Assembly: GCF_020745735.1 (NCBI RefSeq)
Contig: NC_083435.1
Coordinates: 36,605,090 to 36,669,089, forward strand
DNA: 64,000 nucleotides
Direction of reading: 5' to 3'
Source: Hemiscyllium ocellatum
Lineage: Eukaryota
In this document: positions 22,502 through 58,160 of the stretch, piece after piece
Position numbering within the stretch: position 1 is the first letter of the stretch
Layout of the letters: every line of letters starts with the position of its first letter
Program-made: the position numbers and the translations under genes
Notes under the pieces: generated by a model
What the model was told of the DNA's origin: nothing
The model's input: only the letters and a program-made list of their open reading frames with translations
Databases searched by the model: none

Positions 22502-22777
22502 GAATTCACACCTTTCAATGGTTTATTACTGTTGAGGTCAGTGATGGCGGCTCTGTGAAGGGATCGATGAGATTTGGAGCCAATGGAAAGGATTATATCA
22601 GTTTAGACCCAGACAGAATGAGATGGATCGTAACCAATCCCATTGCAGTGAAGACAAAAGAGGAATGGGATTCCGATGAATCCTGGAACAATTACTGGGA
22701 AACACAGCCGCATGGACAGTTTGTTGAGCATTTGAAGAGATATTTGCAAGCTGGAAAGCAGGACTTTGGAAGGAAAG
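22502..22777 (+). CDS. MHC class I-like heavy chain, alpha2 exon, copy 1 (nonclassical)
   Basis: gacag|...aaag|gtgtgt; 276 nt, phase 1-1. GIHTFQWFITVEV..NGKDYISLDPDRMRW..TKEEW..FVEHLKRYLQAGK aligns by eye to class I alpha2. Confidence 0.9.
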
Positions 22778-22894
22778 GTGTGTATTTCAGTTTTGATCCC
22801 ATGTTCTGATCTAACCTCACTGATCTATGAAACCGTTCTCCCATTCCATTCAGTGTCTGTCTGTTGTTTGTGTTTTCCCCCTTTCCCATCACAG

Positions 22895-23166
22895 TTCAGC
22901 CTGAAGTGTTCATCTCCAGGAGGGAGCCCAATGGTCAGGACAAGCCGCTCACTCTCTCCTGCCTGGTCACTGGGTTTGATCCTGTAGACATCGAGGTGAC
23001 CTGGCGAAGGAATGGAGAGGTCATGTCTGAGACCCAATCCTCAGGGGTTCGACCGAACCACGATGGGACCCATCAGATCCAGAAAGAGATTGAGATCAAT
23101 GCTGGGGATGAGGATCAATACTCCTGTCAAATTGAACACAGCAGCCTGGCAGAGGCCCAGCTCTAT
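22895..23166 (+). CDS. MHC class I-like alpha3 (Ig C1-set) exon, copy 1; 3' end lost in assembly gap
   Basis: Acceptor tttcccatcacag|. VQPEVF..LSCLVTGFDPVDIEVTW..NHDGTHQI..YSCQIEHSSL. Confidence 0.9.
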
Positions 23167-23301
23167 NNNNNNNNNNNNNNNNNNNNNNNNNNNNNNNNNN
23201 NNNNNNNNNNNNNNNNNNNNNNNNNNNNNNNNNNNNNNNNNNNNNNNNNNNNNNNNNNNNNNNNNNNNNNNNNNNNNNNNNNNNNNNNNNNNNNNNNNNN
23301 N
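23167..23301. other. Assembly gap (135 N)
   Basis: Run of N. Confidence 1.
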
Positions 23302-24710
23302 CAGGGTTCCCCAGCAGAAAATGAAGTGCTGTCCTTCCAGCTTGTGCTGAGCTTCCCTGGTGCACTGCAGCAAGCCTGAGACAGAGATGTTGCCCAGGGA
23401 ACAGGGTGCTGTGTTGTAGTGATAGGAACTGAAATCTCCAGGTCGTTTTTGTGACGCGAGCATGGGGTTGTGTGGAGCAGTCACCCAGTGTCCGCTTTGT
23501 TTCCCCAATGTAGAGGGGACCACAGTCTCAGCAGTGAATACAGTCACCGGGATTGTGTGGAATGCTTCACCTGGAAGGTGTGTTTTGATTCTGGGATACA
23601 GAGGACAGTGGAAGTAAATGGGTAGGTGACACACCTTCTGCCATTGCAGGGAAAAGTGCTGTGTTGCTGTGGGGGGAGGGGGATGTGGAGGTCAGTGGGG
23701 GGATTGGGGAGGGGGTTGGGAGTGAAGAAGGAATGGACTAGGGTTTCTGAGAGGGATTGGCCCCTCTAGAAGGTAGGGAAGGGTCAGGCAGTGGGATGTG
23801 GGTTTGGTGCTGGCATCCTGCTGGAGGTGGAAATGGCAGCTAATGATCCTCTGGAAGTAGATGGTGGTGGGACGGTGGGTGAAGACAAGGGGACCCTATC
23901 ACTGTTGTGGGAAGAGGGGGGGGGTGAGGGCCGAAGTGTGGGAGATGGGTCAGACCCGGCCAACTGTCCTGTCAACCACGGTGTTGGGAATTCCTCAGCT
24001 GAGGAAGAAGATGGATATTGCTGAGGCCATCTTGTCAAAGTTGGCATCATTCAAACAGATGCAGTGGAGACAAAGTCACTCAGAGAACAGGACAGTCTTT
24101 ACAGGAAGCAGGATGTGAGGGTGTCCAGTCAAGGGACCTGTGGGACTCGGTGGGTTTGCAGTGGGTATGGTCACCAGGCTCTCCCAGAAATGGAAACAGG
24201 TGTTAAGGAAGGGAAGGGAGGAGTCAGAGATGGACCAAGTGAGGGGGAGAGCAGGGTGGAAACTGAAAGGGAAATTGATAAACTTGATAAACCAATTCTG
24301 GACAAGGGAGGGAAGCAGCATTGGTGATATCATTGACATACCGGAGGGACAGTTGTGATGGAGGCCAGAATAAGGGTGGAACAAGGAATGTCCCAAGAGG
24401 CAGGCATGTGGATATGTCTGGTACACATACCTTTGACCTGAAGAAAGAGTTGAGGGAAGTTTTAAGGACAGGCTTGGCCAGGAGGAGGGTGGTGATGGAT
24501 GGAGATGGTTCCGACCATTTTACCAGGAAGACTAGGAGAGCCCAGAGACCATCCTGATTGGGGGGTGGACGTGTACAAGGGGACGATACATCCAAGGTGA
24601 AGGGGAGGTGGCCACAGCCCATGAACTGGAAATTCTGAAACTGACATAAAGCAGAGGAATGGCGGGTGTAAGGGGGAAGGGACTGGACAAGGGCAGATCA
24701 CAAAACAAAG
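23302..24710 (-). mobile_element. Old degraded Penelope-like element fragments
   Basis: Patchy similarity to 33800-34700 (e.g. cagatgcagtggagacaaag versus cagatgcggcggagacgaag). Confidence 0.55.
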
Positions 24711-24729
24711 TTGAGGAAGGATAAGATGG

Positions 24730-25420
24730 TTCCTGTGCAGCTGAAGCAGTGAGTCTGCCCAGTCTGCCCAGTGTGGGGATTTTGGGAAGGAGGTAGAAGT
24801 GAGATGTGTGGAGTTAGGAGACTATGAGCTTGGATACACAGAGGGTGAGATTCTTGGATGAGATGAGGTTGGTGAACATTGTGGACACAATGCACTGTTG
24901 TACCAATGGTAGGGTCATGGGTCAGGGGGAGATAGGAGGAGGGACCAGAGAGCTGGTGCACATCCTGTGCAATGTAGAGATCAGTACACCAGGCAACAAC
25001 CACAGGGCTGAGCCAGCATGAGGCGCTGCTGTTGGACAGAGGTTGGGAATATGCATCTGGCGATGTATGACACTGAGTGTGGATCTCAGGAAATGATGAG
25101 AACAGCTGTCAGGGGACCGTTGAACAGCACAGAGAGACCTGTGATGCTGGATGGATTCAACACATAGGATGGAACTGGAGTTGGAATCCACGTGGGGGGA
25201 GTCTGAGCCAGAGGCTGTCTCTGAGAAATATGATGTGATTGTGGATAGGGGTTTTCACAAATACCTTGTCAAACACCAGGAGTGACAGCAAAATGAATGG
25301 TGATGAAAGATTGGAATGGAAATCCTGTCAGAGAGAGGAGCAGCACTTCTTCAAATTGGCTATGTACAATAGCAGCTGATGTGATAACAAGGCCTGGTAT
25401 GTGGGGGTGGGGAAACGTGA
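24730..25420 (-). mobile_element. Degraded L1/Tx1-like fragment
   Basis: The minus strand shows Tx1-like C-terminal remnants (PTPTYQAL); no open frame. Confidence 0.35.
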
Positions 25421-26639
25421 CATTTACGTTGGATCCATTTATGTATCTGTGACATTGTCACTCTCTCAGATCCCTGTTTCACCCTCCCAGACACTTAAAA
25501 CCTGTCAAAATCATTCCCTCCCCACTCTGAAGTGATTGCCTCGTGTCTGTCCATACCTGAACTTGTAGGTTTCCTGGGCTCCACTGCAGGACATTCCCGG
25601 AGCCTCATTGCGGGATAACAGGATTATCCTGTTCCAATGTGAACATGGACATCATTGTCCACCCTTCCACATCACAGCAAACACAGAATTACAGCTCATT
25701 GTTCACACCCAGTTCTTTCAGAATTGAGATAAAGTTTTTTTTTCCTGGGAATGTGTTTCCACAGATTGATCAGTGGAGCCTGGATCCATGGGTTTGGGAA
25801 GTGATTCTTCAAGTGAGACCTGCATCAGTCATTCTTCTGTCCCATCTCAGAAATGTGAGCAGTGTCACCGTCAGAGGGATCTTCACAGATGGTTTCTCCC
25901 TCACACTTTCTCATCTTCACTGTCTTCAGTTAGCCGATGGGGAGGTGATGGCACGGTATTGTCACTGCACAGTTAGTCCAGAGACCCAGCTAATGTCCCA
26001 GGGACCCAAGTTCAAATCCTGCTATGCCAGGTAGTGGAATTTGAATTCAATAAAAATCAGGAATTAAGAGTCTGCTGATGACTATGAATTCATTGTGTAT
26101 TGTTGGGAAAAACCCATCTGACTAATGTCCCTGAGAGAAGGAAAGTGCAATCCTGGTCTGCATGTGACTCCAGTCCCACAGCAATGTGATTGACTTTAAC
26201 TTCCTTCTGGGCAGTTCGATAAATGGTGGCTTCATCCCCTGAATGAATTAAGAAAGGTTATTTGACTTTAGGTATGATCATTTTTAAATGCCTGAAATGA
26301 AGCAATCTCCTGAGGCTACTCAGAGGTGTATTTTATATTGGAAGAAACCCCTCTATTTATGTAGAAAAATTGGGATTCTTTTGTGAATATCTGAATAAAT
26401 GTTATAGCTGTCTTTATATTGAGAAAATACTAGTTATATTAGTATTCTGTTTTATTTTAATCTGTTTTGATTTAAAAGTGATCATACCTAAATTCAAACA
26501 ACCTTTATTTTATCATGTTAATGTATTTAAGGTAACAAAATCTGTAACTATTTATCAATGTTTAACTAAAATACATTTAATTGTGGTTTCTAAATCAATA
26601 AAAAATTGTCAGTGGTTGATTTATTTGAATTAAGCAATG

Positions 26640-27730
26640 ATTTGTCAGGAAAGGTTTAATTCATTCCCTCAGCAGCTTGTGGCTCTTGGAATCAGCAGAT
26701 GTTGAGCTTCAATTCAATGTGAACTGGGGGAGTTAAGACCATCCAACTCCCCAACAAGCCTTCCCCAAACTAACCAGGAAGCTCAAAGTTTATTTAATGT
26801 GTGTTCTGAACTCGATAGTTGATCATGTCTCTAAGTATTCATTCCCCAAGGTGGCATGTCCTTTCTGAAAGATCTGACTGTGTGAAGAGACAATTAAACA
26901 GCTATTGGGAATCAGCAATACTTCACAGGAACAAAAATAGAAATTACTTCAGAAACTCAACAGTGTCTGTGGAGAGAAAGAAAAATTAATGCTTTGGGTC
27001 CACCCAGTGATTTCAGTGCTGATGGTAGCTAGGAAAGGAAAATGTTCACACTGATATCCAGGTTGGAGGTCCGAGGGGTGTAAAGGAGTAAGCGACAGGT
27101 GGAGATGGAGCCAGAGAGAGAGAAACACAGTTAGGCAGACAAATGATGGACAATTCTAAGTCAGGCAAGGAGAGAAACTGAAAATGGAGACCACAACTGG
27201 GTGAAAAATGATTTGGCTGTGCTGAAAGCAGCCCATGTTATGACAGGGCTTGGGGTGTGGGGATTTGGGGAAGGACATGGAAAAAGGTGCTGACGCCCAA
27301 AAGATATTGAGTCCTGAAGGCTGCAGAGCCCCCAAGTGCAAAATGAAATGGTGTTCTTCCATGTTGCGCTTAGTCCCACTGGAGTACTTCAGTGAGCCCA
27401 GGACAGAAATATTAGCCAGGGAACGTGGTGGGGTATTGAGGGGGCAGGCAGCTGGAACATCAGGGTCACTTTTGCAGGCAGAATGTAGGTGTTCTGTAAT
27501 GTGGCCGGCCAATCTGCATGTTACTTCCTCAATGTGGAGGAAGTCACATTGTGAGCAACTTCACTGATTGGTGATCCAGCAGGTATTGGAGGGAGGAAAG
27601 GGCAGGCTCACCAGCTGAATGTTTCACCCAAGGCTGAGCACACAAGCTTCTGGGCTGGGACAGATGGAGAGGAACCTTCATTGTCAATGTTTCCTTCTGA
27701 CAGGTGCTGCCTTTGGACACACCGCCTGGA
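26640..27730 (+). repeat. Unclassified dispersed repeat, split by a ~620-bp PLE-like insert (~26935-27560); inverted paralog at ~47830-48345
   Basis: 26645-26785 and 27560-27725 are reverse-complement matches to 47840-47980 and 48110-48290. A diverged copy starts near 44755. Confidence 0.75.
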
Positions 27731-28199
27731 GGGGTTGGGGTGGGGGCAATGTCAGCAGCCGAGGGGGGGTGAAAGAGGACCTGGAGAAGGCACTGAGCCC
27801 TGGGACACAGAGGGAAGTGAGACAGTAACTGAGTTGGAGGGGGAAGGGGAGTGATATCCAGATGAACAGGAGGGGGAGCACCCTGGGCTGGGAGGGCAGG
27901 TGAAGTGACACTATTACTCCTGATTTTGTTCCCTCTCAGAGTCCCCCAGCTATTCTCGAGCTGCACTGGCAGTGCAGTGGAAGACCAGTAATTTTGAGAC
28001 AGGTCAAAGAGTGTCTTTCACTGAGCTGATAGCTCTCCAAAAGCAGTTGATGTTTGTATCAATGACACTGTCCTCCCTCGAACTACATCCCCAGCTCCTT
28101 TAGGTAAGCTGACCTGATGATGAAGGGACATAGGGTCAGTTGGCCTCATTCACAAAGAGCACAGTCTCACTTTTGCCTCAAATTTACCTTACCTCCTGA

Positions 28200-28900
28200 G
28201 AGCAGTCTAACCAGGTGCTCAGTCAATGCACCAGCAGCAAATCTGAGCACAGGATGGTTCCATCCTCCATGTACAGGGAAGCTTTGAACTGAGTGCCTCC
28301 ATTTCCTGGGATAGTCACTCTTCCTGATGGACTTGGCAAAAAGGTTTGACAACACTTGATCAGAATCGACCAGCCAATCTTTGTGTTCTCCACAAAATAC
28401 TTATCATTCCCACTTGCCACATTCTCATCGGCATCACTTATAAATAGCACAAATAAAAAGGGACCCAGCATGTGGTACACAATTCACACCAGACTCCAAT
28501 CTCACAGACAGCTTAATACCATCACCTCAGTCTCTTGTCACCAAACCAACTTTAAATCCAATTTCCCAAAGTACCCTGGAAACCAAGACATTTGTATCAG
28601 TTTCCTGTGTGGGACCTTGTCAAAGGCCTTGTTGAAATCTGTATAATTGACATCAAGTGCCTGACCCTTATCCAAACTGTGGGTGACCTTCTTGGAAAAT
28701 TCAAAACAATTCATTAGGCACGACCTCCATTTGACAAAGCCATGCTGATAACCCTCATCAAACCTTACCTCCCTAAATGGAGATTACTTTCTTCCTTGGC
28801 CATTTTCTCCAGCAGTTTCCTTGCCACTGATGTTAGACTCACTTGTCTATAGTTCCATAGTCTATTCATACCACCCTACATTTGTACAGTGGAACCACAT
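28200..28900 (-). mobile_element. Old CR1 RT fragment
   Basis: The minus strand reads ..GPFLFVLFISDADENVAS..KYFVENTKIG (decayed FADDTKIG). Confidence 0.6.
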
Positions 28901-29324
28901 TAGCTGTCCTCCAGGTCTCTGGCCCCTCCCCTGTGGACAGAGATTATTTAAATATTTGAGTCAAGGCCCCTGTAATTGCCGCCCTTGCCTCCATGAGCAA
29001 ATCTCACTCCATGAGGTATCACTTTATTCATGGGATTATTGTGCGACACTGTAAAAGAGGCTTTTGGAAATTCCTGTGCATCACAACAACAACACTGCCC
29101 ACATTAACCCTCTCTGTCATCTCTCCAAAATCTCTAGTTATTACACATGGTTTCTTTTTTACAGGCATGATCTCTGCTTCCTCTGCACCACTCCCTCTCC
29201 CTATCCCAAGTCTAAGAAAGATTGAAACGATGGCCATTGCATCTAAAATTTCCACATTCACATCTCTCAGCCTCATTGAATGCATCTCACCCAGTTTTGG
29301 AGCCTTATCCATTTTAAGTGCAGA

Positions 29325-29881
29325 CAGCCGACCAAAAAAGACCCAGTACAACCCATGGACAAAACCAACGTCATTTACAAAATTCCATGCAAGGACTGCC
29401 ACAAACACTACGTAGGACAAACAGGAAGAAAGTTAGCCACCAGGATACATGAACACGAGCTAGCCACAAAAACACACGACCCTCTCTCCCTCGTAGCCCT
29501 ACACACGGATGCAAAAAAACACCATTTCGACTGGGACAACACATCTATCCTGGGACAGGCTAAGCAAAGACATGCCAGAGAATTCCTGGAGGCCTGGCAC
29601 TCCAACCACAACGCCATAAACAAACACATAGATCTAGATGCCATCTATCAACCCCTCAGAAAAGGAACAGGAAATGACATCACCACAAACCCAGGAACCC
29701 CACCCAGGACAAACATATAAATAGAAAACAGGAGACAACAGCTTCGCTTCACTTGGAGGTCACCACTGATGATGTTACCTAGCCAGGTAATAAAACTTCT
29801 GGGTATCAAACCTACAGGTCAGCGAGCAAACCTACACCCTAAACCTCAACCTGAGCTACAAACCTTCACAAACCTTGCAAA
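29325..29881 (+). mobile_element. Penelope-like element 3' end, GIY-YIG endonuclease plus terminal repeat (family B)
   Basis: KTNVIYKIPCKDCHKHYVGQTGRKLATRIHEH..REFLEAWHS; same family as 51344-52248. Confidence 0.85.
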
Positions 29882-32334
29882 AACCTACCATTAATTCATC
29901 AATTTTAACCCTTTCAAGTACCTGATGCAGTGCTTTCACCATGGCCTTGAGCAGCACCTTCTTCGGTAAAGACCAACACAACCCATTCATTTAGCCCCTC
30001 AGCCTTCCTCCATTCTTCACAAGTGTACATCCCCTTTGTGTTTCCAAATTGTTCTTCCTCCTGATTTTCTTACTTATATACCAAGAAGATTTATGGAATA
30101 CATGCTTAGTTGGCTACCTTTTTCATACTTCTGTTATGCTTCTCGCATTCACTTTGTTACCTTGTTCTGAAAGATTCAAAGCAGTTCTCAATTGTATGTT
30201 GTATTTGCCACAATCATAAATACACTTCCTTATTTATCAGTATTTTGACATCTTTTGCCAACCAGGAAGCTGTATTTCATTTTGCCCTACTTTTACTACT
30301 GAGAAAACACACTTGATTGTGCCTGAAATGCCCCCTCTTCATTCAACTGTGATTTTCCTCCCAATCTTTGACTCCAGTTTGTCTTAATAGATACATTGCT
30401 ATCCCCATTAAACTGGCATTCCCACAATTGTTCTTATGAACATCAGAATAGGAGTACACCAACTCGGTCTGCTCAGTTGTTCAGTATGATCATGTCTGAT
30501 TGAACAATGCAATACATTTTACTCACCTCATTCCCAAAACCATGTATGCCATTAGAAACCAAATTTATCAATCTGTGATCTGAACAAACTCAGGCTGGGC
30601 ATCCTCCAAGTATGATTCACAACTCTTCATAAAACAAACTCATCACATTGGACCTTAATCGCATCTGACTTATTTTTCCCCACTTGGGTCATTCAGTTCT
30701 GGTTTCCCCATCAGGGCATACACACTACAGTACATCTATTAGCTCTCTTTTATCAAGTTTGGTTTTGCAACCCTCAAGCAAATTTGACAACACTTTGTGC
30801 TTTCCAAATTCAAATTCATTTTATCATAAATATATAGTAGAGAAAATTTTAGATTTCAAAGTCTAATCAGCTTCTGTTTCTCTGTTTTATTTCTCACTCT
30901 CTTCTAAAATAACCATGTGATTTTGCTATCTTCCAGTCAAAAGGAATAGAAAATTAAGGTATTCATGAATGCTTCAAATATTTCAACATCCAACTCCTTC
31001 AATACTTTGAAATGAAGAATATCAAGCTTTGAGGTTTAATAATTTTCAGCCTCATTAATTTCTGCTGTACAATCTTATTACTAATATTACTTCCCTCTAA
31101 CTCCATTCTCCTTGGTGACTTAGATTTCTACTTCTTGGAGACTGCTGGTATCTTCCTCAGTGAAGACAAACATAAGGTATTCCTTTAGTTTCTCTTCTGT
31201 TTCTCTGTTCTCCATTTTAAAGTCTCTTGACTCTACTTTTAATGAACCCACCTTTGGGTTGGCCGAGCATTCCCTTTTATATATGACAAAGGCTTTTACC
31301 ATCGGTTTGTGCGTCTTATTTTGTCTGAGTGCAGTGAATTGTATTCTCCTGTTGCTTCACAGTATTTGCATCTTATTTATTGTATTCTCCAAACCTTCCA
31401 ATACTCAGAATTACTGTTATTTCTGACAATTTTATAGGCCTTTGTTTATTTTTCTCTGAGTTCTGAACTTCTTTTGACAGGCTGGTTGATGTATTTTCTT
31501 TCTTTATTGCACATTGACAGAATGCATACTGGCTGCAAGTTATGTGACAGTCCTTTAATGATTGTCCATTGCTTATGTAGAGTCATGCCGTTTATTGTAT
31601 TTTTCAACTTCACCAAAACTAATTTGGACCTCAGGTCTTCATAATTTGCCTTATGTGAAAATTAACACCCTTGCTAGAATGCTACCATGATTATAAAGAT
31701 TACATAACATTCTGTCGTTTTAAGATCACTCATTCTTGAAGTGTTTTTTAAATAATAACAAGGTTATTAATTAACAATTTCTTCTTACAAAATACTAGAT
31801 CTGAAATAAAACATCCTCTCATTGGCCCTCCAGCATTGTGTTTGAGAAAACCACCCGATAAAGACTCCACAATCTCGTTCTTCAGAGCTTCGGCGTTCAA
31901 CTGTGTTTTGTTTTCTCATTATATGTGCTGGTAGAAGTCACTCATGGCAACTTAGATGTCCATGTGACGTAACGCTCTCATGTCCTGATGAAAATCATGC
32001 CACATCTCGCCAACCTCCCCCACCCCCCGCCCTCCCCGCTATCTGGTGGCCTCGAAATGAATCTAACTAACGTCTTCTGCCCCCTGCTATCTTTCAGCAG
32101 CATCTGAACAGACTCCACACACCACTCCCGATCCGAGCTGTTCCCTTGGTAATTCATTGATGGCATCCCGTAATATTGTTCTAACACAACCACCCTTTAC
32201 AACTCGTCATCTATTCCGAATCTTCGAATTTCCTTGTCTATTCAGTTCCCCGTTCTGCGAAACATGTGACCTTTATTTCTGTAATAGCAATTAGCTCATA
32301 GTGAGCTCTGTTCGAACGTTTCGCTTAACTGAAA

Positions 32335-32470
32335 CTGAAAAATGTGTTGCTGGCCTATGTCCGAAACGTCGATTCTCCTCCTCCTTGGATGCTGCCTAAC
32401 CTGCTGCGCTTTTCCAGCAACACATTTTTCAGCTCTGATTTCCAGCATCTGCAGTCCTCACTTTCTCCGT
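32335..32470. mobile_element. Short palindromic PLE-terminus derivative
   Basis: ctgaaaaatgtgttgctgg ... ccagcaacacatttttcag inverted arms around a truncated hammerhead (gaaacgtcgatt). Confidence 0.6.
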
Positions 32471-33190
32471 TTTGCTTGATAGCCTTGCTGTGAATGTTCT
32501 ATCCATTCGGGGGGAGTGCTATTAACTTTACCTTTTTGACACCATTTCACTTTCACACCATACTCGATGTTCAGCTCTCTGTCCTGCCTTTCGACTTCCT
32601 TGCTTTTGTTCTGCTTATTGTTGTCAAAATTACTTCCCTCCAATTAGATTTGTATCCCGCGATGAGCTGGTTTAAACTCACACTAACAACTCTCGGAAAT
32701 CTCGCTGTGGGGATATCAGCTTCTGCACAGTTAAAGGTGTAATCCGTCCAGCAGGTGCTCGCGGAACATTTACACTTCATTGTTCTTTACACTACCGCTA
32801 TTCAATTATAATTTGGTTCCAAATTTTATTAATTAAAAACCACCATCTCCCTGCCCACACTCCATATCCAACGAAGAGATGTTATATAGCAATGGCTGGT
32901 TTACCGACCCAGAAATCTCCGCGGTTGAGAACTTCCCCTATACAGGCTACAATAGGGAAGTACGCAGACGCAGTAACTCCCTCACTCTGGAGCATGCGCA
33001 TTGTGACAGAGGGCTGGGTGATGCTGGCGGTGAGGATGTGGGAACGAGAAGGGAACCTTGGAGCCGGAGGGTGGATGGGGAATGGCTCCAAACATTTATT
33101 AAATGCTGCAAACCTCGATTAAAATCCTGCCTCCGACCGAAGGAAGGGCAGGAAAAAGGAGTAGACCCTGAATGATCAATATCTTCGAGT

Positions 33191-35179
33191 AAAAAATGAG
33201 GTCTGCAGATGCTGGAGATCACAGCTGCAAATGTGTTGCTGGTCAAAGCACAGCAGGTTAGGCAGCATCTCAGGAATAGGGAATTCGACGTTTCGAGCAT
33301 AAGCCCTTCATCAGGAATAAGAGAGGGAGCCAGGCAGGCTAAGATAAAAGGTAGGGAGGAGGGACTAGGGGGAGGGGCGATGGAGATGGGATAGGTGGAA
33401 GGAGGTCAAGGTGAGGGTGATAGGCCGGAGTGGGGTGGGGGCGGAGAGGTCAGGAAGAGGATTGCAGGTTAAGAGGGCGGTGCTGAGTTGAGGGAACCGA
33501 CTGAGACAAGGTGGGGGGAGGGGAAATGAGGAAACTGGAGAAATCTGAATTCATACCTTGTGGTTGGAGGGTTCCCAGGCGGAAGATGAGGCGCTCTTCC
33601 TCCAGCCGTCGTGTAGTTGTGTTCTGCCGGTGGAGGAGTCCAAGGACCTGCATGTCCTCGGTGGAGTGGGAGGGAGAGTTAAAGTGTTGAGCCACGGGGT
33701 GATTGGGTTGGTTGGTTCGGGCGGCCCGGAGGTGTTCTCTGAAGCGTTCAGCAAGTAAGCGGCCCGTCTCCCCAATATAGAGGACGCCACATCGGGTGCA
33801 GCGGATGCAATAGATGATGTGTGTGGAGGTACAGGTGAACTTGTGGCGGATATGGAAGGATCCCTTGGGGCCTTGGAGGGAAGTGAGTGTGGAGGTGTGG
33901 GCGCAAGTTTTACATTTCCTGCGGTTGCAGGGGACGGTGCCGGGGGTGGAGGTTGGGTTGGTGGGGGGTGTGGATCGGACGAGGGAGTCACGAAGGGAGT
34001 GGTCCTTGCGGAACGCTGATAGGGGAGGGGAGGGAAATATATCCTTGGTGGTGGGGTCCGTTTGGAGGTGGCGGAAATGGCGGTGGATGATACGTTGTAT
34101 GCGGAGGTTGGTGGGGTGGTAGGTGAGAACCAGTGGGTTCTGTCTTGGTGGCGGTTGGAGGAGCGGGGCTCAAGGGCGGAGGAGCGGGAAGTGGAGGAGA
34201 TGCGGTGGAGGGCATCGTCGATCACGTCTGGGGGGAATCTGCGGTCCTTGAAGAAGGAGGCCATCTGGGCTGTGCGGTGTTGGAATTGGTCCTCCTGGGA
34301 GCAGATGCGGCGGAGACGAAGGAATTGGGAATATGGGATGGCGTTTTTACAGGGGGCAGGGTGGGAGGAGGTGTAGTCCAGGTAGCTGTGGGAGTCAGTT
34401 GGTTTATAATAGATGTCTGTGTTGAGTCGGTCGCCCGAGATAGAAATGGAAAGGTCTAGGGAGGGGAGGGAGGAGTCTGAGACAGTCCAGGTGAATTTCA
34501 GGTTGGGATGGAAGGTGTTAGTAAAGTTGATGAACTGTTCAACCTCCTCGTGGGAGCACGAGGCAGCGCCGGTACAGTCATCGATGTAGCGGAGGAAAAG
34601 ATGGGGGGTGGTGCCAGTGTAGTTGCGGAAGATGGACTGTTCCACATATCCTACGAAGAGGCAGGCATAGCTGGGGCCCATGCGGGTGCCCATGGCAACT
34701 CCTTTAGTTTGAAGGAAGTGGGAGGATTGAAAAGAGAAGTTATTCAGGGTGAGGACCAGTTCAGTCAGTCGAAGGAGGGTGTCAGTGGAAGGGTACTGGT
34801 TGGTGCGGCGGGAAAGGAAGAAGCGGAGGGCTTTGAGTCCTTCGTGATGGGGGATGGAGGTGTACAGGGACTGGATGTCCATAGTGAAAATAAGGCGTTG
34901 GGGACCGGGGAAGCGAAAATCCTGGAGGAGGTGGAGGGCGTGGGTGGTGTCCCGAACGTAGGTGGGGAGTTCTTGGACCAAAGGGGACAGGACCGTGTCG
35001 AGGTATTGGGAGATGAGTTCGGTGGGGCAGGAGCAGGCTGAGACAATGGGTCGGCCGGGGCAGTCAGGTTTGTGGATTTTGGGCAGGAGGTAGAAACGGG
35101 CGGTGCGGGGTTGTGGGACTATGAGGTTGGAAGCGGTGGATGGGAGATCCCCTGAGGTGATGAGGTCCTGGATGGTCAA
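33191..35179 (-). mobile_element. Young 5'-truncated Penelope-like element (RT + GIY-YIG, family A), one frameshift near 34135
   Basis: The 542-aa ORF contains FYLLPKIHK..GRPIVS..GVAMGTRMGPSYA..LRYIDD. After the frameshift, IYCIRCTRCGVLYIGETGR..FREH continues in another frame. Confidence 0.92.
33283..33318 (-). ncRNA. Minimal type I hammerhead ribozyme motif
   Basis: The reverse complement reads ATTC CTGATGA A GGGCTTATGCTC GAAAC GTC GAAT. Confidence 0.7.
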
Positions 35180-35184
35180 TGTCA

Positions 35185-42119: not shown

Positions 42120-43030
42120 CTAATTAATATTATGTATATCTCTAATGCTATTAGCCTTCTTCACTACCTGCTGGACCTGCATGCTTACCTTCATTGAGTG
42201 GTGTACAAGAACACACAGATCTCTCTGTACTGGCCCTTTACCTAAATTAATTCCATTGAGGTAGTAATCTGCCTTCCTGTTCTTGCCACCAAAGTGGATA
42301 ACCGTACATTTATCCACATTAAACTGCATCTGCCATGCATCTGCCCACTCACCTAACTTGTCCAAGTCACCCTGTAATCTCCTAACATCCTCATCACATT
42401 TCACCCTGCCACCCAGCTTTGTATCATCAGCAAATTTCCTAATGTTATTGCTGATACCATCTTCTATATCATTAACATATATTGTAAAAAGCTGCAGTCC
42501 CAGCACAGATCTCTGCGGTACCCCACTGGTCACTGCCTGCCATTCCGAAACGGAGCCGTTTATCACTACCCTTTGTTTCCTATCAGCCAACCAATTTTCA
42601 ATCCAATCTAGTACTTTGCCCCAATACCATGCGTCCTAAGTTTACTCACTAACCTCCTATGTGGGACTTTATCAAAAGCTTTCTGAAAGTCCAGGTACAC
42701 TACATCTACTGGATCTCCCTCGTCCGTCTTCAGAGTTACATCCTCAAAATTCAAGAAGATTAGTCAGGCACGATTTCCCCTTCATAAATCCATGCTGACT
42801 CTGTCCTATCCTGTTACTACTATCCAGATGTGCCGTAATCTCATCCTTTATAATAGACTCCAGCATCTTTCCCACCACTGAGGTCAGACTAACTGGTCTA
42901 TAATTTCCTGCTTTCTCTCTCCCACCTTTCTTAAAAAGTGGTATAACAATCCTCAGGAACCGATGCCGAATCTATCGAACTCTGGAAAATAATCACCAAC
43001 GCATCCACGATTTCCCGAGCCACCTCCTTC
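42120..43030 (-). mobile_element. CR1-type LINE RT fragment
   Basis: ORF 42120-42590 reads QRVVING..VTSGVPQRSVLG..IRKFADDTKLGG. Confidence 0.85.
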
Positions 43031-43099
43031 AGTACCCTGGGATGTAGTCATGAATGTATCTAAAGAAAATCAGGATCTACCTTCAGAAACAAATAGTAA

Positions 43100-48524: not shown

Positions 48525-48942
48525 TTAACAGTGTCCGGGAGGGTGAGGCTGGGCTAGGAGGAGACTGAAATCAGTCTGACAGCATTAACAGTGTCTGGGA
48601 AGGTGGGACAAAGTCAGGAGGGGAGTGAAATTGGACTGTCAATGGGACTGCTACAGCTGTAACAGTATCTGTGAGGGTGAGACAGGGCAAGGAGAGGGAT
48701 GAAATTAGTCAGACAGGTTTTAAAGGTGTGGGAGGATGTGACGGGGTCAGGAGGGGAGGGGAATTTGACAGGATTTAACAGTGTCTGGGAGGGTGGGACA
48801 GGGTCAGGAGGGGAGGGGAATTAGTCTGACAGGGTTTAACAGTGTCTGGGAGGCTGGGACAGGGTCAGGAGGGGAAAGGAATTAGTTTGACAGGGTTAAA
48901 CAGTGAGTGGGAGGGTGGGACGGGGTCAGGAGGGGAGTGAAA
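48525..48942 (+). repeat. ~60-bp purine-rich minisatellite, ~7 diverged copies
   Basis: Unit aacagtgtctgggagggtgggacagggtcaggaggggaggggaattagtctgacagggttt recurs near 48527, 48587, 48661, 48722, 48777, 48838 and 48899. Confidence 0.85.
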
Positions 48943-51343
48943 AAGTTCCAAATAAGTCTACAGAGAGAAATTGACATTTCATATACTAAATTATGAAGAA
49001 GTTGGAACAGAGATATCCAAAGCTGTTTTTTTTATTTTCTCAATATTCAAAATGGAAAGTATTATAAAATTACACACTCTAAAACATTCACTCTCACTCA
49101 TTGGACCCAGGATTCAATCACCCTCAGCATTAACGAACCACATTCACACAGCACAGTGCAGAGGGAGCCAAGGGTGAAGGAGTCATAGAGTCGTAGAGTC
49201 ATAGAGATGAACAGCATGGAAACAGACCCTTCGGTCCAACCCATCCATGCCGATCACATATCCCAACCCAATCGATCCCACCTGCCAGCACCCAGCCCAT
49301 ATCACTCCAAACCCTTCATATTCATATACCCACCCAAATGCCTCTTAAATGTTGTAATTGTACCAGCCTAGACCACATCCTCTGGCAGCTCATTCCATAG
49401 ATGTACCATCCTCTGTGTGAAAAAGTTGCCGCATAGGCCTCTTTTATATCTTTCCCCTCTCACCTTAAACCTATGCTCTCTAGTTCTGGACTCACCTACC
49501 CCAGGGAAAAGACTTTGCCTATTTACCCTATCCATGCTCCTCATAATTTTGTAAACCTCTGTAAACCTCTTTACTCAGAGAGTAGTAAGGATATGGAATG
49601 CTTTGCCTGCAACGGTAGTAGATTCGCCAACTTTAAGTACATTTAAGTCGTCATTGGACAAGCATATGGATGTACATGGAATAGTGTAGGTTAGAAGGAC
49701 TTCAGATTGGTATGACAGGTCGGTGCAACGTCAAGGGCCGAAGGGCCTGTTCTGCGCTGTAATGTTCTATGTTCTATAACGTCACCCCTCAGCCTCCGAC
49801 GCTCCAGCAAACACAACCCCAGCCTGTTCAGCCTCTCCCTATAGCTAAAATCCTCGAACCTTGGCAACATCCTTGTAAATCTTTTCTGAACCCTTTCAAG
49901 TTTCACAACATCTTTCCGATAGGGAGGAGACCAGAATTGCATGTAATATTCCAACAGTAGCCTAACCAATGTCCTGTACAGCCACAACATGACTTCCCAA
50001 CTCCTGTAGTCAGTACTCTGACCAACAAAGAAAGCATACCAAATGCCTTCTTCACGATCCTATCTTTCTGCGACTCCACTTTCAAGGAGCTATGAACCTG
50101 CAGTCCAAGGTCTCTTTGTTCAGCAACACTCCCTAGGAACTTACCATTAAGTGTATAAGTCCTGCTAAGATTTGCTTTCCCAAAGTACAGCACCTTGCAA
50201 ATAGCTGAATTAAACTCCATCTGCCACTTCTCAGCCCATTGGCGCATCTGTTCAAGATCCTGTTGTAATCTGAGGTAACCCTCTTCGCTGTCCATTTCAC
50301 CTCCAATTTTGGTGTCATCTGCAAACTTGCTTACTGTAACTCTTATGCTCACATCCAAATCATTTATGTAAATGACAAAGTAGAGGACCCAACACCGATC
50401 CTTGTGGCACTCCACTGGTCACAGGCCTCCAGTCTGAAAAACAACCCTCCACCACTACCTTCTGTCTTCTACCTTTGAGCCAGTTCTGTATCCAAATGGC
50501 TAGTTCTCCCTGTATTCCGTGAGATCTAACCTTGCTAATCAGTCTCCCATGGGGAACCTTGTCGAACGCCTTACTGAAGTCCACATAGATCACATCTACT
50601 GCTCTGCCCTTTGTTACTTTCTCAAAAAACTCAATCAAGTTTGTGAGACATGATTTCCCACGCACAAAGCCATGTTGACCATCCCTAATCAGTCCTTGCC
50701 TTTCCAAATACATGTACATCCTGTCCCTCAGGATTCCCTCCAACATCTTGCCCACTACTGAGGCAAGTCTCACCGGATTATAGTTCCCTGGCTTGTCTTT
50801 ACCGCCCTTCTTAAACAGTGGCACCACGCTTGCCAACCTCCAGTCTTCTGGCACCTCACCTGTGACTATCGATGATACAAATATCTCAGCAAGAGGCCCA
50901 GCAATCACTTCTCCAGCTTCCCACAGAGTTCTCAGGTACACCTGATCAGGTCCTGGGGATTTATCCACCTTTAACCGTTTCAAGACATGCGACACTTCCT
51001 CCTCTGTAATCTGGACATTTTGCAAGATGTCACCATCTATTTCCCTACAGTCGATATCTTCCATATCCTTTTCCACAGCAAATACTGATGCAAAATATTC
51101 ATTTAATAGCTCCCCCATTTTCTGTAGCTCCAACAAAGGCTGCCTTACTGATCTTTGAGGGGCCCTATTCTCTCCCTAGTTACCCTTTTGTCCTTAATAT
51201 ATTTGTAAAAACCCTTTAGATTTTCCTTAATTCTATTTGCCAAAGCGACTTCATGTCCCCTTTTTGCCCTCCTGATTTCCCTCTTAAGTATACTCCTACT
51301 TCCTTTATACTCTTTTAAGGATTCACTCGATCTATCCTATCTA

Positions 51344-52248
51344 TGTAGGTTTGCTCGCTGAGCTGTAGGTTTGATATCCTGACGTTTCATTTCCTGGGTC
51401 AGTAACATCATCAGTGGCGACCTCCAAGTGAAGGATGCTGTTGTCTCCTGCTTTCTATTTATAGATTTGTCCTGGATGGGGTTCCTGGGTTTGTGGTGAT
51501 GTCATTTCCTGTTCCTTTTCTGAGGGGGTTGATAGATGGCATCTAGATCTATGTGTTTGTTCATGGTGTTGTGGTTGGAGTGCCAGGCCTCTAGGAATTC
51601 TCTGGCATGTCTTTGCTTAGCCTGTCCCAGGATTGATGTGTTGTCCCAGTCGAAATGGTGTTTTTATTTCCATGTGTAGGGCTACGAGGGAGAGAGGGAC
51701 GTGTCTTTTTGTGGCTAGCTGGTGTTCGTGCTTCCTGGTGTCTAACTTTCTTCCTGTTTGTCCTAAGTAGTGTTTGTGGCAGTCCTTACGTGGAATTTTG
51801 CAGATGACGTTGGTTTTGTCCATGGGTTGTACTGGGTCTTTTAAGTTTGTTCGTTTTTGTTTGAGAGTAGTGGTGGGTTTGTGTGCTACTAGGATTCCGA
51901 GGGGTCTTAGTAGTCTGGCTGTCATTTCTGAGAATCTTTGCTGTATGGTAAGGTGGTTAGGGTTTCTGGCTGTGTTTGGTCTGCTTGTTGTGGTTTGTTC
52001 CTGAGGAATCTATGGACCAACCCCTCAGAAAACGAACAGGAAATGACATCACCACAAACCCCAGGAACCCCATCCAGTACGAACATATAAATAGAAAGCA
52101 GGAGACAACAGCTTCACTTCACTTGGAGGTCACCACTGATGATGTTACCGAGCCAGGTACTGAAACGTCTGGAAATCAAACCTACAGCTCAGCGAGCAAG
52201 CCTACACCCTAAACCTCAACCTGAGCTACAAACCTTCACAAACCTTGC
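51344..52248. mobile_element. PLE family B with inverted terminal repeat (minus-strand GIY-YIG fragment plus plus-strand copy of its tail)
   Basis: 51344-51535 is the reverse complement of ~52013-52210. ORF 51617-51925 reads KDPVQPMDKTNVICKIP. Confidence 0.85.
52133..52172 (+). ncRNA. Minimal hammerhead motif, PLE family B
   Basis: CCA CTGATGA T GTTACC GAGCCA GGTACT GAAAC GTC TGG; stem II is imperfect. Confidence 0.55.
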
Positions 52249-52489
52249 TATCCTGTCTACACCTGTCTGTGCTTCCTTCTTTTTCTTAACCAAACCCTCA
52301 GTTTATTTAGTCATCCAGCATTCCCAATACCTACCAGCCTTCCCTTTCACCCTGACAGGAATATACTTTCTCTGGATTCTTGTTGTCTCATTTCTGAAGG
52401 CTTCCCATTTTCCAGCCGTCCCTTTACCTGTGAACATCTGCCCCCAATCAGTTTTCGAACGTTCTTGCCTAATACCGTCAAAATAGACT

Positions 52490-54425
52490 GGGTGTGTCCC
52501 AGGTTACCATTCCACGTTAGTGATATGCTCGGTGTTTCCCAGGTTACTGTTCCAGGTCAGTGATGTACTTGGTGTTTCCCAGGTTACTGTTCCAGGTCAG
52601 TGATATACTCGGTGTTTCCCAGGTTACTGTTCCATGTCAGTGATATACTCGGTGTTCCCAGGTTCCTGTTCCAGGTCAGTGATATACCCGGTGTGTCCCA
52701 GGTTCCTGTTCCAGGTTAGTAATATACTCGGTGTGTCCCAGGTTACTATTCTAGGTCAGTGATATACTCGGTGTGTCCCAGGTTACTATTCCAGGTCAGT
52801 GATATACCCGGTGTGTCCCAGGTTACTGTCCCAGGTCAGTGATATACTCGGTGTGTCCCAGGTTACCGTTCCAGGTCAGTGATATACTCGGTGTGTCCCA
52901 AGTTCCTGTTCCAGGTCAGTGATATACCCGGTGTGTCCCAGGTTACTGTTCCAGGTTAGTGATGTACTCGGAGTGTCCCAGGTTCCTGTTCCAGGTCAGT
53001 GATATACTCGGTGTGTCCCAGGTTACTGTCCCAGGTCAGTGATATACTCGGTATGTCCCAGGTTCCTGTTCCAGGTCAGTGATATACCCGGTGTTTCCCA
53101 GGTTACTGTTCCAGGTCAGTGATGTACTTGGTGTTTCCCAGGTTACTGTTCCAGGTCAGTGATATACTCAGTGTTTCCCAGGTTACTGTTCCATGTCAGT
53201 GATATACTCGGTGTTCCCAGGTTCCTGTTCCAGGTCAGTGATATACCCGGTGTGTCCTAGGTTCCTGTCCCAGGTTAGTAATATACTCGGTGTGTCCCAG
53301 GTTACTATTCTAGGTCAGTGATATACTCGGTGTGTCCCAGGTTACTATTCCAGGTCAGTGATATACCCGGTGGGTCCCAGGTTACTGTCCCAGGTCAGTG
53401 ATATACTCGGTGTGTCCCAGTTACCGTTCCAGGTCAGTGATATACTCGGTGTGTCCCAAGTTCCTGTTCCAGGTCAGTGATATACCCGGTGTGTCCCAGG
53501 TTACTGTTCCAGGTCAGTGATGTACTCGGTGTGTCCCAGGTTCCTGTTCCAGGTCAGTGATATACTCGGTGTGTCCCAGGTTACCGTTCCAGGTCAGTGA
53601 TATACTCGGTGTGTCCCAGCTTCCTGTTCCAGGTTAGTGATATACCCGGTGTGTTCCAGGTTAGTGATGTACTCGGAGTGTCCCAGGTTCCTGTTCCAGG
53701 TCAGTGATATACTCGGTGTGTCCCAGGTTACTGTCCCAGGCCAGTGATATACTCGGTGTGTCCCAGGTTACTGACCCAGGTCAGTGATATACTCGGTGTG
53801 TCCCAGGTAACTGTTCCCAGTTAGTGATATATTTCATGTATCCCAGGTTACTGTTCCAGGTTAGTAATGGAACCGGTATGTTCCAGGTTACTATTCCAGG
53901 TCAGTGATATACCCGGTGTTTCCCAGGTTACTATTCCAGGTCAGTGATATACTCGGTGTGTCCCAGGTTACTGTTCCAGGTCAGTGATATATCCGGTGTT
54001 TCCCAGGTTACTATTCCAGGTCAGTGATATACTCGGTGTTTCCCAGGTTACTGTTCCAGGTCAGTGATGTACTTGGTGTTTCCCAGGTTACTGTTCCAGG
54101 TCAGTGATGTACTCGGTGTGTCCCAGGTTACTGTTCCAGGTCAGTGATGTACTCGGTGTGTCCCAAGTTACCGTTCCAGGTCAGTGATATACTCGGTGTT
54201 TCCCAGGTTACTGTTCCAGGTCAGTGATATACTCGGTGTGTCCCAGGTTACTGTTCCATGTAAGTGATATACTCGGTATGTCCCAGGTTACTGTTCCAGG
54301 TCAGTGATATACTCGGTGTGTCCCAGGTTACTGTTCCAGGTTAGTAATGGACCCGGTATTTCCCAGGTTACTGTTCCAGGTTAGTGACATACTCAGTGTG
54401 TCCTACTTTACTATTCCAGGTTAGT
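52490..54425 (+). repeat. 40-bp satellite, ~48 copies (ggtgtgtcccaggttactgttccaggtcagtgatatactc)
   Basis: Period 40 over ~1.93 kb. Confidence 0.97.
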
Positions 54426-54709
54426 GATCTTCTGTTGAACAATCCAATCCCTGGATTCTATCCCAGCCTCTCCCCTGTGTCCATATTGACTCCATCGAGT
54501 ATCTGAGTGACTCTGATTCTGTGTTTACTCCCTGTTCTGAGAGGCTGCAGCAGCTAATTCTGTCCCAGTTGTATCTGATTCTGTTTATTATATCAGACAG
54601 GATTCTGACAGTGTGATAAAGTTGTGAATTATTGAAGATTGTCACTGTTTGGATTCGGCCTCACTTTTCACTCATGTTTATTTGCCTGCTCCTGAAGTAT
54701 GCCTTCCAG

Positions 54710-54834
54710 ACACTAACATGTTTAAAGTGGTTTTCATGATAGTCTCTGACATCAATGATTTTCCTGAGTTTTGTGGTGGTGTTATTATGGTCAGTGGAGC
54801 CTGTCATTATGATGTTGTTTCTGACGGTGATTAG
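54710..54834 (+). pseudogene. Truncated paralogous MHC I alpha1 exon fragment (DTNMFKVVFMIVSDINDFPEFCGGVIMVSG..*)
   Basis: Phase-1 acceptor gccttccag|. Aligns to the full alpha1 starting 152 nt downstream (ATNDLTVIYAIVSRINDFPEATSTAMVNG). Confidence 0.7.
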
Positions 54835-54861
54835 TAATCAGCTCCTTTCTTTGAGTTACAG

Positions 54862-55123
54862 CCACTAATGACCTTACTGTGATTTACGCAATTGTTTCTA
54901 GAATTAATGATTTTCCTGAAGCTACAAGCACTGCAATGGTCAATGGAGTTACAATAGGTTATCGTGACAGCAAAATCCATCACTGCATCCCCAGGCAGCA
55001 ATTCATCAAAGAGTATGTTGACATAAAATTCTGGGATGACATCACAGGCCTTGTGATAGAGCATACAGAAATGGCAAACAAAACTCGAAAATGTGATAAT
55101 GAAGAGGATAAACCAGACATGAG
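54862..55123 (+). pseudogene. MHC class I-like alpha1 exon, copy 2, with +1 frameshift (~55080) and TGA at 55120-55122
   Basis: gttacag|...catgag|gtaaga; 262 nt (261+1). FPE..MVNGV.IGYRDS..CIPRQQFIKE..FWDD; the corrected end is KLENVIMKRINQT*. Confidence 0.85.
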
Positions 55124-56643
55124 GTAAGAACAGGCGTGTCAGAAATTCCCTGTTTGTTGTCCCTTTTCATCACAAAACCTAATCTATTCCTCAGCACTGC
55201 CTGCTGGGCTCCAGTGCTGGGAAAGACATGTCTTTGTTCTTCTCCTGTTTCCTTGAACCTTGTTTCCATCACCTCCTCAGCTCCGACATTTACCCCACTC
55301 CTCACATCCTTGGGTATTGAAGAATGGGAGCCATTGTTACAGAAGCGCCAAACTGCTTTACGTACTTTCAGCAAAATTTCATGGCCTTTGTGCTCTGTTC
55401 CTGTTTTTAAAACACTCATTAGAAGCTTAGGTTTCAGTTTGACTCACTTTATCACCACAGCCGAGTCAGACAGTGACACAACTTCATAGAAACATTGAAA
55501 ATAGATGCAGGGATCAGCCATTTGTCCCTTCAAGCCTACAGCACCACTCAATATGATCATGGCTGATCATGCAATCTCAGTGTCGCCATGCTGTTACCTA
55601 TCCTACATTGTGTGATAAATATTTTCTCATTTTGATTTAAACAAATCAGATTTACAAATGCCACAGGGACATATAATACGACAGCAAATTATTGCAGCTA
55701 CTGGAAACCTGAAATATAAATTCAAAATTCTGGAAATCCCCAGCAGGTCAGGCAGTATCTGTAATGAGAAAAAGACGGTCGAGGTCTCAGGTTCAACATC
55801 TGCACCAATCCTGAAGAAGGGTCTTGTTTCTCCCTGCACAGATACTGAGAGACATACTGAGCATTGTCAACACTTGGCATTTTCTCCTGAAGCAAAACAA
55901 CCTGTTTGTCCATCCTGCAAAAAGCCATCAGAGCTCCTCATTCTCCAACAGCAAGAAACCCAGAGGCAGCTGCTTGAGGTCTTGTTTAGCACAATTCTAA
56001 ACTTTAATTTTATATCATGTTAATGTATGAAGTAAACATTCACAACTTGCTCAGCAATCAAACTAGACAAAGCATGACATTGATAGCTTGTTACAAATTG
56101 AGTAATTGATAAAAATAACCAATGAAATGTGTGAAGATGCAGAGCGAACTAAAAATCTTTCTTATCTTTTTGCTGAAGAAGCAGAGCTGGAAGGGGACAG
56201 CCTGAGGCTCAGATCTGGGTCATCAGGGAGGGGGAGGAGATTCAATAAGGAGTTGGGTTTAAGTAACACTGAGTTGACATTCTCATCTGGTGGTGCACTC
56301 TCTGAGCTGCTGTCGATGGAATTCATACAAACAAAAGGTGTAGGAAGTGGGTTTCCCTCCCAACTGGGTTTTCTCCCCCTCCTGGTCCAGGGTTCACACA
56401 GTGGGACACACACCAACAGTCCCCTACTCCCACATTATACCATTGTGAAGGAGGAGTTGATTTGGGAGATGGTTGACTCAGGGCCTCACACCAGCCAGAA
56501 ACAGTCCATTTTTAATTTTCTGGAAATAGTGTACATGTGGTCAGGTCAAGTTCAAATGAAAAAAATAGTTTTGGTAATTTATTGGAAATGTATTTAATAA
56601 GAGCACGCTAAATGTATCACAGAAATATACTACATCTCACCAC

Positions 56644-56890
56644 TGGGTGGCATGGTGGCTCACAGCGCCAGGGTCCCAGGTTCAATTCTTGTCTGTGTGG
56701 AGTTTGCACGTTCTGCTCATGTCTGTGTGGGTTTCCTCTAACAGTCACAAAGATGTGCAGGTTAGGTAAATTGCCCATAGTGCCAGGTGCATTAGTCAGA
56801 GGGAAATGGGTCTGGGTGGGTTACTCTTTGGAGGGTCAGTGTGGACATGTTGGGCCAAACGGCCTGTTTCAGCACTGTAGGGAATCTAAT
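56644..56890 (+). mobile_element. V-SINE/HE1-like SINE present only in duplication copy 2
   Basis: cagcgccagggtcccaggttcaatt..tgtgtggagtttgcacgttct..gggccaaacggcctgtt. Absent at the equivalent site (~21405) of copy 1. Confidence 0.8.
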
Positions 56891-57469
56891 CAAAACACAG
56901 AAAATGAGTTTCTAAGTTAAACAGAAAGTGAGGAATATAAAGATATTAATTGGGCAAGAATCATTCCTATTATTCATGAACTACATACTATTTGTAGTTG
57001 AGACATTTCCCAATCAGGAATCATATAACCAGTGAATTGAGAACAGGAGGGACATCAAAGAGAAATATTTGAGTGGTCACGGTCCATTCCTGGAGGCTGA
57101 CAGGGTGGTAACAGACAGATATTGACTACATTCCCCCAGAATGCAGCCTGTGATTGAAATAAATGACAACAAGGACTATAACAATCACTCCAGGATAGTG
57201 GGAATGTGAGCGCTGGAATTCTGACCCGGATCAGAGAGCCTGTTCCTTATCTGCTCCAGGTTGAGGTGTGAGGCAGCCACTGGAGAAAGGGGCAGTACTG
57301 CCTGAGTCTGGGACCCTCTGACAGCACAGGCCCTGGGGATTCGCACCGTGTGTAACCCCCTCACCCTGGGCCTGATACGAGATCCCCAATCTGCTTTGAT
57401 CAGACTGCATTTCTCAGTTTCAGTTCACAATTAATCACTGAGGATTGATCCCTGTTTGGTCACTGACAG

Positions 57470-57745
57470 GAATTCACATTCTCCAATGGATACATTCTGT
57501 TGAGGTCAGTGATGGTGGCTCTGTGAAGAGATCAATGAGATTTGGATTCAATGGAAAGGATTATATCAGTTTAGACCCAGACAGAATGAGATGGATTGTA
57601 ACCAATCACTTTGCAGTGATGACAAAAGAGAAATGGGATTCCGATGAATCCTGGAACAATTACTGGGAAACACAGCTGCATGGAATCTTTGTTGAGTATT
57701 TAAAGAGATATCTGGAAGCTGGAAAGGAATATTTCAGAAGGAAAG
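57470..57745 (+). CDS. MHC class I-like alpha2 exon, copy 2
   Basis: gacag|...aaag|gtatgt; 276 nt and open: GIHILQWIHSVEV..FVEYLKRYLEAGKEYFRRK. Confidence 0.9.
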
Positions 57746-57862
57746 GTATGTATTTCAGTTTTGATCCCATGTTCTGACCTAACCTCACTGATCCATGAAA
57801 CCGTTCTCCCATTCCATTCAGTGTCTGTCTGTTGTTTGTGTTTTCACCCTTTCCCATCACAG

Positions 57863-58141
57863 TTCAGCCTGAAGTGTTCATCTCCAGGAGGGAGCCCAAT
57901 CGCCAGGACAAGCCGCTCACTCTCTCCTGCCTGGTCACTGGGTTTTATCCTGCAGACATTGAGGTGACCTGGCTAAGGAATGGAGAGGTCATGTCTGAGA
58001 CTCAATCCCCAGGGGTTCGACCGAACCACGATGGGACCCATGAGATCCAGAAAGAGATTGAGATCAATGCTGGGGATGAGGATCAATACTCCTGTCAAAT
58101 TGAACACAGCAGCCTGGCAGACGCCAAGCTCTACAATTGGG
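57863..58141 (+). CDS. MHC class I-like alpha3 exon, copy 2
   Basis: catcacag|...tggg|gtaagg; 279 nt and open, with both Ig cysteines and GFYP. Confidence 0.92.

Positions 58142-58159: not shown

Positions 58160-58160
<1 letters not shown>

Follow-up and report, generated by a model that had tools for sequence, protein, structure and literature searches.

Our analysis of a 64-kb stretch of the genome of the shark Hemiscyllium ocellatum (contig NC_083435.1; this whole stretch is called the window below) concerns two class I major histocompatibility complex (MHC) genes whose alpha2 domain has no cysteines. We consider it likely that a single unit, from a family that best fits the shark lineage UEA, is present in the window as two incomplete and probably dead copies, that the copies lie in transposon-rich DNA, and that the cysteine-less alpha2 domain was inherited from their family. 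The missing pair, C101 and C164, forms the alpha2 disulfide of other class I molecules.

Two class I units can be recognized in the DNA, both on the forward strand and about 35 kb apart; we call them copy A and copy B and have taken their exon borders from the DNA reading (Table 1). An earlier note, made from the letters of the window, had described both alpha2 exons as open, 276 nt long and free of cysteine, and the DNA reading agrees. Both are flanked by AG/GT borders and match positions 93–177 of the Pfam model PF00129 (MHC_I) above the curated cutoff. Both alpha3 exons match PF07654 (C1-set; E 4e-18 and 1e-16) and keep their immunoglobulin (Ig) cysteines, which sit in LSCLV and YSCQI. In the family alignment the C101 column holds V and the C164 column holds F in copies A and B alike, again as noted earlier. 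The proteins are 80% identical in alpha2, which bears out the difference of about 20% given before, and 91% identical in alpha3. Alpha2 (276 nt) and alpha3 (279 nt) follow the class I plan of one domain per exon with phase-1 introns. The alpha1 exon of copy B departs from it.

Because both introns flanking alpha1 are in phase 1, the length of this exon should be divisible by three, but in copy B it is 262 nt. A nucleotide alignment to an intact zebra-shark exon places one extra base near 55079–55083, in a GAAAAT run. In the ancestral frame the last full codon is a TGA (55120–55122), where intact members have Ser. The family hidden Markov model (HMM) for alpha1 matches positions 1–74 in one frame (E 3e-30) and positions 74–85 in another. 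Translated in its actual frame, the alpha1 exon of copy B finishes in phase 2 and would run into a stop 11 codons into alpha2. Part of this exon is duplicated 150 bp upstream.

Copy A has even less of a gene. The family HMMs for alpha1 and for the leader find no match between 15650 and 22500, and within the window the alpha1 model matches copy B only. Homology to copy B sets in only at 20401. Neither the family leader (MLLILFSISLCFS..., highly conserved) nor the transmembrane exon is matched by the family HMMs anywhere in the window. For comparison, an intact zebra-shark gene has its leader 2.1 kb before alpha1 and its transmembrane exon 1.1 kb after alpha3. Within the window, neither copy A nor copy B has a continuous frame running from leader through alpha1, alpha2 and alpha3 to the transmembrane exon. 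Copy A is most likely a truncated alpha2–alpha3 fragment and copy B most likely a pseudogene. That both are relics seems probable to us, and for copy A alone we would say so more firmly. In the trees both copies group with P0202, a protein of Chiloscyllium punctatum, with 90% and 92% identity; the terminal branches measure 0.12–0.16 for copy A, 0.07–0.10 for copy B and 0.006 for P0202. Putative RNA runs of the same species contain 14–19% of the words of copy B alpha2–alpha3, which is what a conserved alpha3 shared with expressed paralogs would give. The small word shares in these putative RNA contig sets suggest, though not decisively, a lack of expression.

One could also argue that both units are functional tandem nonclassical genes, that their missing exons lie beyond the window or in long introns filled with transposable elements, and that the frameshift is an assembly error. 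Several points do weigh against our reading of the copies as relics. First, alpha2 and alpha3 are open and have canonical splice sites. Second, the ratio of nonsynonymous to synonymous substitution rates (dN/dS) between A and B is 0.44–0.55 (from few sites) and not 1. Third, family genes can span tens of kilobases. A cytoplasmic exon stands isolated 7 kb upstream of copy A (15617–15649); it is probably the last exon of a family member with its alpha exons before the start of the window, which would make family introns tens of kilobases long. The transmembrane exon of copy B could lie past the window end. Fourth, the frameshift sits in a short A run, where it could be an assembly error, and contigs from RNA runs are unable to prove that the copies are silent.

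Against functional genes stands the TGA, which arose by substitution and does not depend on the indel. Nowhere in the window is the highly conserved leader present. No alpha1 exon precedes copy A, although the last exon of the previous gene is only 7 kb away, and the 31 kb after copy A contain no transmembrane exon. No RNA run has copy B alpha2 beyond the words common to paralogs. Hence, we regard two functional genes as improbable. The earlier note's view of the two units as tandem genes does not hold up: with the frameshift and stop in alpha1 of copy B and the lack of an alpha1 exon in copy A, they do not look intact.

The assembly gap beside copy A does not change this picture. The frame of copy A alpha3 stays open over exactly 90 codons, as far as 23166, and the similarity between the copies ends at 23165 in A and 58133 in B. 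Judged by homology with copy B, the gap removes only about 7 nt of the exon together with the donor, and no conclusion depends on it. The DNA from 23302 onward shows no similarity to the DNA 3' of alpha3 in copy B and reads as a minus-strand transposon fragment. Since the DNA after the gap is unlike that after alpha3 in copy B, continuity across the gap cannot be shown. About 20 nt past the alpha3 donor of copy B lies a (TG)n microsatellite (58160–58215), and the gap in copy A occupies the equivalent place; to judge from this position, the repeat may be the cause of the gap.

The family to which the copies belong is large. With copy B alpha2 as the query, a full HMMER scan against 1.8 billion representatives gave six matches at E<1e-30, which form a tight top group. 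The single-domain top matches are shark proteins with an alpha2 domain that is 66–71% identical and has no cysteine. Paralogs were collected in two word-index searches with full-length family members. The family comprises more than 100 distinct RefSeq proteins with 60–90% identity from 13 shark species, often many per genome: Chiloscyllium punctatum, C. plagiosum, Hemiscyllium, Stegostoma, Rhincodon, Scyliorhinus (two species), Mustelus, Carcharodon, Cetorhinus, Heterodontus, Heptranchias and Pristiophorus. The best matches from rays (batoids) are 31–37% identical and fall outside the family clade; these searches rely on shared words, and absence from rays and chimaeras is not proven by them. 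One protein, P0265, is named 'beta-2-microglobulin-like'. We did not take it for beta2-microglobulin, as it is 85% identical to a class I query and carries a C1-set domain.

In the tree of alpha2 and alpha3 the family forms one clade with a support of 99. The second of the word-index searches added three named references, Squalus Q8HWI9, the Squalus classical class I sequence and a Ginglymostoma 'nonclassical MHC class I antigen'. In a tree that includes them, the sister of the family is Q8HWI9, a 'Non-classical MHC class I antigen' of Squalus acanthias (99/95 support). It carries V101 within the V-E-V motif of the family, lacks a Cys at 164 and is without cysteines in its alpha2 domain. We take this protein to be the Sqac-UAA*NC1 of Wang 2003, later named UCA.

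Which of the shark lineages is this family? Among the nonclassical families of sharks, two are expanded, UBA (which derives from UAA) and the more ancient UEA, while UDA, UFA and UGA are single-copy (PMC12562908, PMC10751288). UEA has been termed 'multicopy' (PMC10751288) and 'expanded' (PMC12562908). The supplements of Verissimo 2023 label genes as 'MHC-Ib' only and give no lineage names. We rejected membership in UAA/UBA because the UAA/UBA-like clade keeps both cysteines and the family lies outside it. The Ginglymostoma-type single-copy clade (one sequence from each of five species) was rejected as well, since it too keeps both cysteines and is separate in the tree. UGA was rejected because the crystal chain 9ch4 is only 32% identical to the P0202 model. 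UEA itself is reported to be shark-only, very large and distantly related to UCA (Almeida et al. 2021, J Immunol 207:824); it is also said to be without the invariant residues that hold the peptide termini. By elimination, and with this description, the cysteine-less family is very probably the multicopy, shark-only UEA lineage.

Alternatively, the family could be an undescribed class I lineage apart from UEA, with the cysteine-less alpha2 domain as a new lineage character. Two observations count both for this alternative and against the name we prefer. No sequence among the search matches is named UEA, and the name we give the lineage is one reached by elimination. In addition, the family keeps the C-terminal peptide anchors T143, K146 and W147 and mostly Y171, which fits less well with a lineage said to be without invariant peptide-end residues. 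Nevertheless, we find an undescribed lineage very hard to believe. The family has more than 100 annotated paralogs, which the shared-word searches found in every shark genome sampled and in no ray. It is the sister of UCA, and its traits match the 'multicopy' and 'expanded' UEA of the literature (PMC10751288, PMC12562908). The other clades that could be compared either have both cysteines (UAA/UBA-like and Ginglymostoma-type) or are distant (UGA). The surveys of 2021–2023 would hardly have overlooked a family of this size.

The possibility of a new lineage, which the earlier note had left standing, thus gives way to the multicopy UEA assignment: the exons nest in a large annotated shark family that is sister to the cysteine-less dogfish UCA. 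The note had named such nesting, within a described lineage already lacking these cysteines, as the result that would overturn it. This is largely what we see, with the reservation that the family is UEA by elimination. Its members are already annotated, everything points to the family having been described as well, and its cysteine-less sister sequence has been public since 2003. In the literature we searched, which did not cover the lineage description of Almeida 2021, there was no statement on the alpha2 cysteines of shark lineages.

The Ginglymostoma-type clade (P0260, P0143, P0256, P0257 and P0261) has a leader near-identical to that of the cysteine-less family (MLLILFSISLCFSWVSP in P0260 and P0143). 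Its alpha domains are only about 36–40% identical to those of the family. At the level of sequence, this hints at a leader exon that was shared or exchanged between the two.

How unusual the missing cysteines are can be seen from a census that took in all alpha2 domains of the retrieved proteins (89 family domains and 167 other class I domains). The domain scores separate the two sets cleanly, with 114–198 bits for the family and at most 74 bits for other class I. C101 is absent from all 89 family domains, where the position is occupied by V (82), A (3), I (2) or L (2), and 71 of the 89 have no Cys in alpha2 at all. Among the non-family domains, 161 of 167 have C at 101 and 156 have C at 164, and about 93% have both. 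A survey of teleosts treats the alpha2 and alpha3 cysteines as hallmarks of class I, kept in the S and P lineages, and finds the alpha2 pair conserved in all five teleost lineages and in most MHC molecules (PMC4364491). Together, the census and the survey mean that a cysteine-less alpha2 domain is unusual for class I overall yet universal in this family. Judged from these sequences, the missing alpha2 disulfide is an inherited lineage trait and the normal state of the family, not a product of decay. The earlier note had argued for a lineage feature on the strength of the two copies, and the census upholds it. That the cysteines were lost through neutral decay in copies A and B only is refuted by the census and practically out of the question: although both copies bear other lesions, V101 also occurs in the full-length RefSeq models of the family and in Squalus UCA, which was cloned from cDNA.

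The two positions have behaved very differently. Position 101 changed 4 times within the family tree (5 times with outgroups), whereas position 164 changed at least 23 times among ten residues (L, F, Y, S, C, G, D, W, H and T). Position 164 ranks 9th in variability of the 92 alpha2 columns and belongs to a hypervariable stretch made up of 158, 159, 162, 163, 164, 166, 167 and 170. Columns have a median of 8 changes in alpha2, against 3 in alpha3. The residues F, S, Y and C at 164 correspond to the four TNY codons, any two of which differ by one step. About two thirds of the family members have L, F or Y there, and five members of the tree, early-branching ones included, retain C164 beside V101. 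Hence, the proposal that hydrophobic packing of V against F replaced the disulfide survives in part. V101 is nearly fixed and the V/F pair is true of these two copies, but there is no conserved pair across the family. Read from the tree, C101V would be a single founding change after which 164 came to be among the most variable positions. We regard this as a modest new detail.

Other residues of the groove differ from the classical state as well. Y7 is mostly replaced by V, position 59 holds F or Y, and position 159 holds H, Q or Y. In the alpha2 helix N153 and W156 are invariant, and W152 is present in 87 of the 89 domains. An AlphaFold model of alpha1–alpha3 of P0202, built with a 56-row alignment, reached a pLDDT (predicted local distance difference test) of 92.5 and a pTM (predicted template modelling score) of 0.79. 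Here residue 101 is on a strand of the floor, residue 164 falls within the long alpha2 helix, and the whole superposes on shark and chicken class I structures with template modelling (TM) scores of 0.86–0.92. The intact paralog P0202 is thus predicted with high confidence to keep the canonical class I fold without the disulfide. Taken with the census, the model suggests that a hallmark disulfide was lost while the fold and the membership in the class I family were retained.

The following history would account for these observations. C101 would have changed to V once, in the common ancestor of the family and dogfish UCA. With its partner C101 gone, 164 would have been unpaired and hence free to change. 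Afterwards the orphaned position may have undergone drift or diversification, chiefly among Leu and the TNY codons (F, S, Y, C), within the hypervariable C-terminal half of the alpha2 helix. Losing the staple between strand and helix may have allowed the helix to vary. Intact members would be surface molecules associated with beta2-microglobulin, with a remodelled and more hydrophobic groove. The open alpha2 and alpha3 exons of A and B would be young relics of a P0202-like functional neighbour, with copy B having become unreadable from alpha1 into alpha2 and copy A having been reduced to an alpha2–alpha3 fragment.

A bolder version is that the loss of the disulfide in the UCA/UEA ancestor has perhaps not been discussed before and was functionally causal, in that it freed helix 158–170 to diversify across more than 100 paralogs. 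We put this forward tentatively and rather doubt it. If it were true, then sharks would possess a panel of flexible class I molecules with a hydrophobic groove that still have the C-terminal anchor triad.

Table 1. Class I features of the window and the assembly gap (positions counted from the first letter of the window).
Feature	Position	Strand	Description
Cytoplasmic exon GSPSGTYTTAP	15617..15649	+	33 nt, clean AG/GT; tblastn 92% identity to P0202 tail
Copy A intron-1 block	20401..21394	+	96% identical to copy B 55631–56627 (self-blastn); no alpha1 exon upstream
Copy A alpha2 exon	22502..22777	+	276 nt, phase 1, 0 Cys, V101/F164; Pfam MHC_I E 4e-14; family HMM E 2e-44
Copy A alpha3 exon	22895..23166	+	Ig C1-set, Cys pair kept; last ~7 nt and donor inside gap; family HMM E 2e-56
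Assembly gap (N), sole N run of the window	23167..23301		A/B homology stops here
Copy B alpha1 partial tandem duplicate (5' third)	54710..54831	+	Own acceptor; ends in two stops; alpha1 HMM positions 1–28, E 1e-4
Copy B alpha1 exon, disrupted	54862..55123	+	262 nt; good acceptor and donor; +1 insertion and TGA
Copy B alpha2 exon	57470..57745	+	276 nt, phase 1, 0 Cys, V101/F164; Pfam MHC_I E 1e-15; family HMM E 3e-51
Copy B alpha3 exon	57863..58141	+	279 nt, Ig C1-set, Cys pair kept; family HMM E 8e-57

Divergence between the copies is patchy across 22119–22777 and 57092–57745. The far intron-1 block and the intron between alpha2 and alpha3 differ by about 3.5%, the 380 nt preceding alpha2 by 14.7% and alpha2 itself by 12%. 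This patchiness suggests that gene conversion from a third paralog may have taken place.

The window contains class I fragments and transposons only, and no MHC framework gene was found in it. The 31 kb that separate the copies are mostly retroelement debris (29280–29720; 33551–35179, 42120–42590 and 49903–51136, the latter three on the minus strand). Among the open reading frames between the copies, several have reverse-transcriptase matches to Pfam RVT_1, and one has a weak GIY-YIG match of the Penelope-like kind. A satellite of 1.95 kb lies directly upstream of the alpha1 region of copy B (52483–54428; 40-bp units, about 49 copies, 87–90% matches). Intron 1 of copy A includes a 36-bp repeat present six times (21586–21810).

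The alpha2 disulfide is among the most conserved hallmarks of class I, and this family, with over 100 genes, has managed without it for hundreds of millions of years. If the model is right, then the class I fold does not need this disulfide, and the family could serve as a natural system for the role of the disulfide in groove stability and ligand choice. This significance belongs to the described and annotated family. The locus studied here adds two broken copies and no evidence for new functional genes.

Compared with known systems, the family is most like UEA. It is a large multigene family that occurs in sharks of either superorder, with no ray member among the shared-word matches; it shows a relationship to UCA, Y7 and Y159 have mostly given way to other residues, and alpha3 is conserved. 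This likeness is one of description. While the RefSeq members are intact, the copies in the window are disrupted or incomplete. Squalus Q8HWI9 shares the alpha2 domain without both cysteines and the same V-E-V strand motif, and it is the sister of the family. However, it is only about 35–42% identical, sits on a long branch, has no N86 glycosylation site and is reported from dogfish only. Classical shark UAA (PDB 6LUP) has the same exon plan, the same fold (TM 0.86) and the same T143, K146 and W147, but it possesses the C101–C164 pair as well as Y7, Y59 and Y159, and its identity is about 32–34%. Shark UGA (PDB 9ch4) and UFA, which are CD1-like, are also nonclassical shark class I molecules of comparable fold (TM 0.87–0.88). 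They differ from the family in sequence, with 32% identity for 9ch4, and in number, being single- or low-copy where the cysteine-less family is large (PMC12562908).

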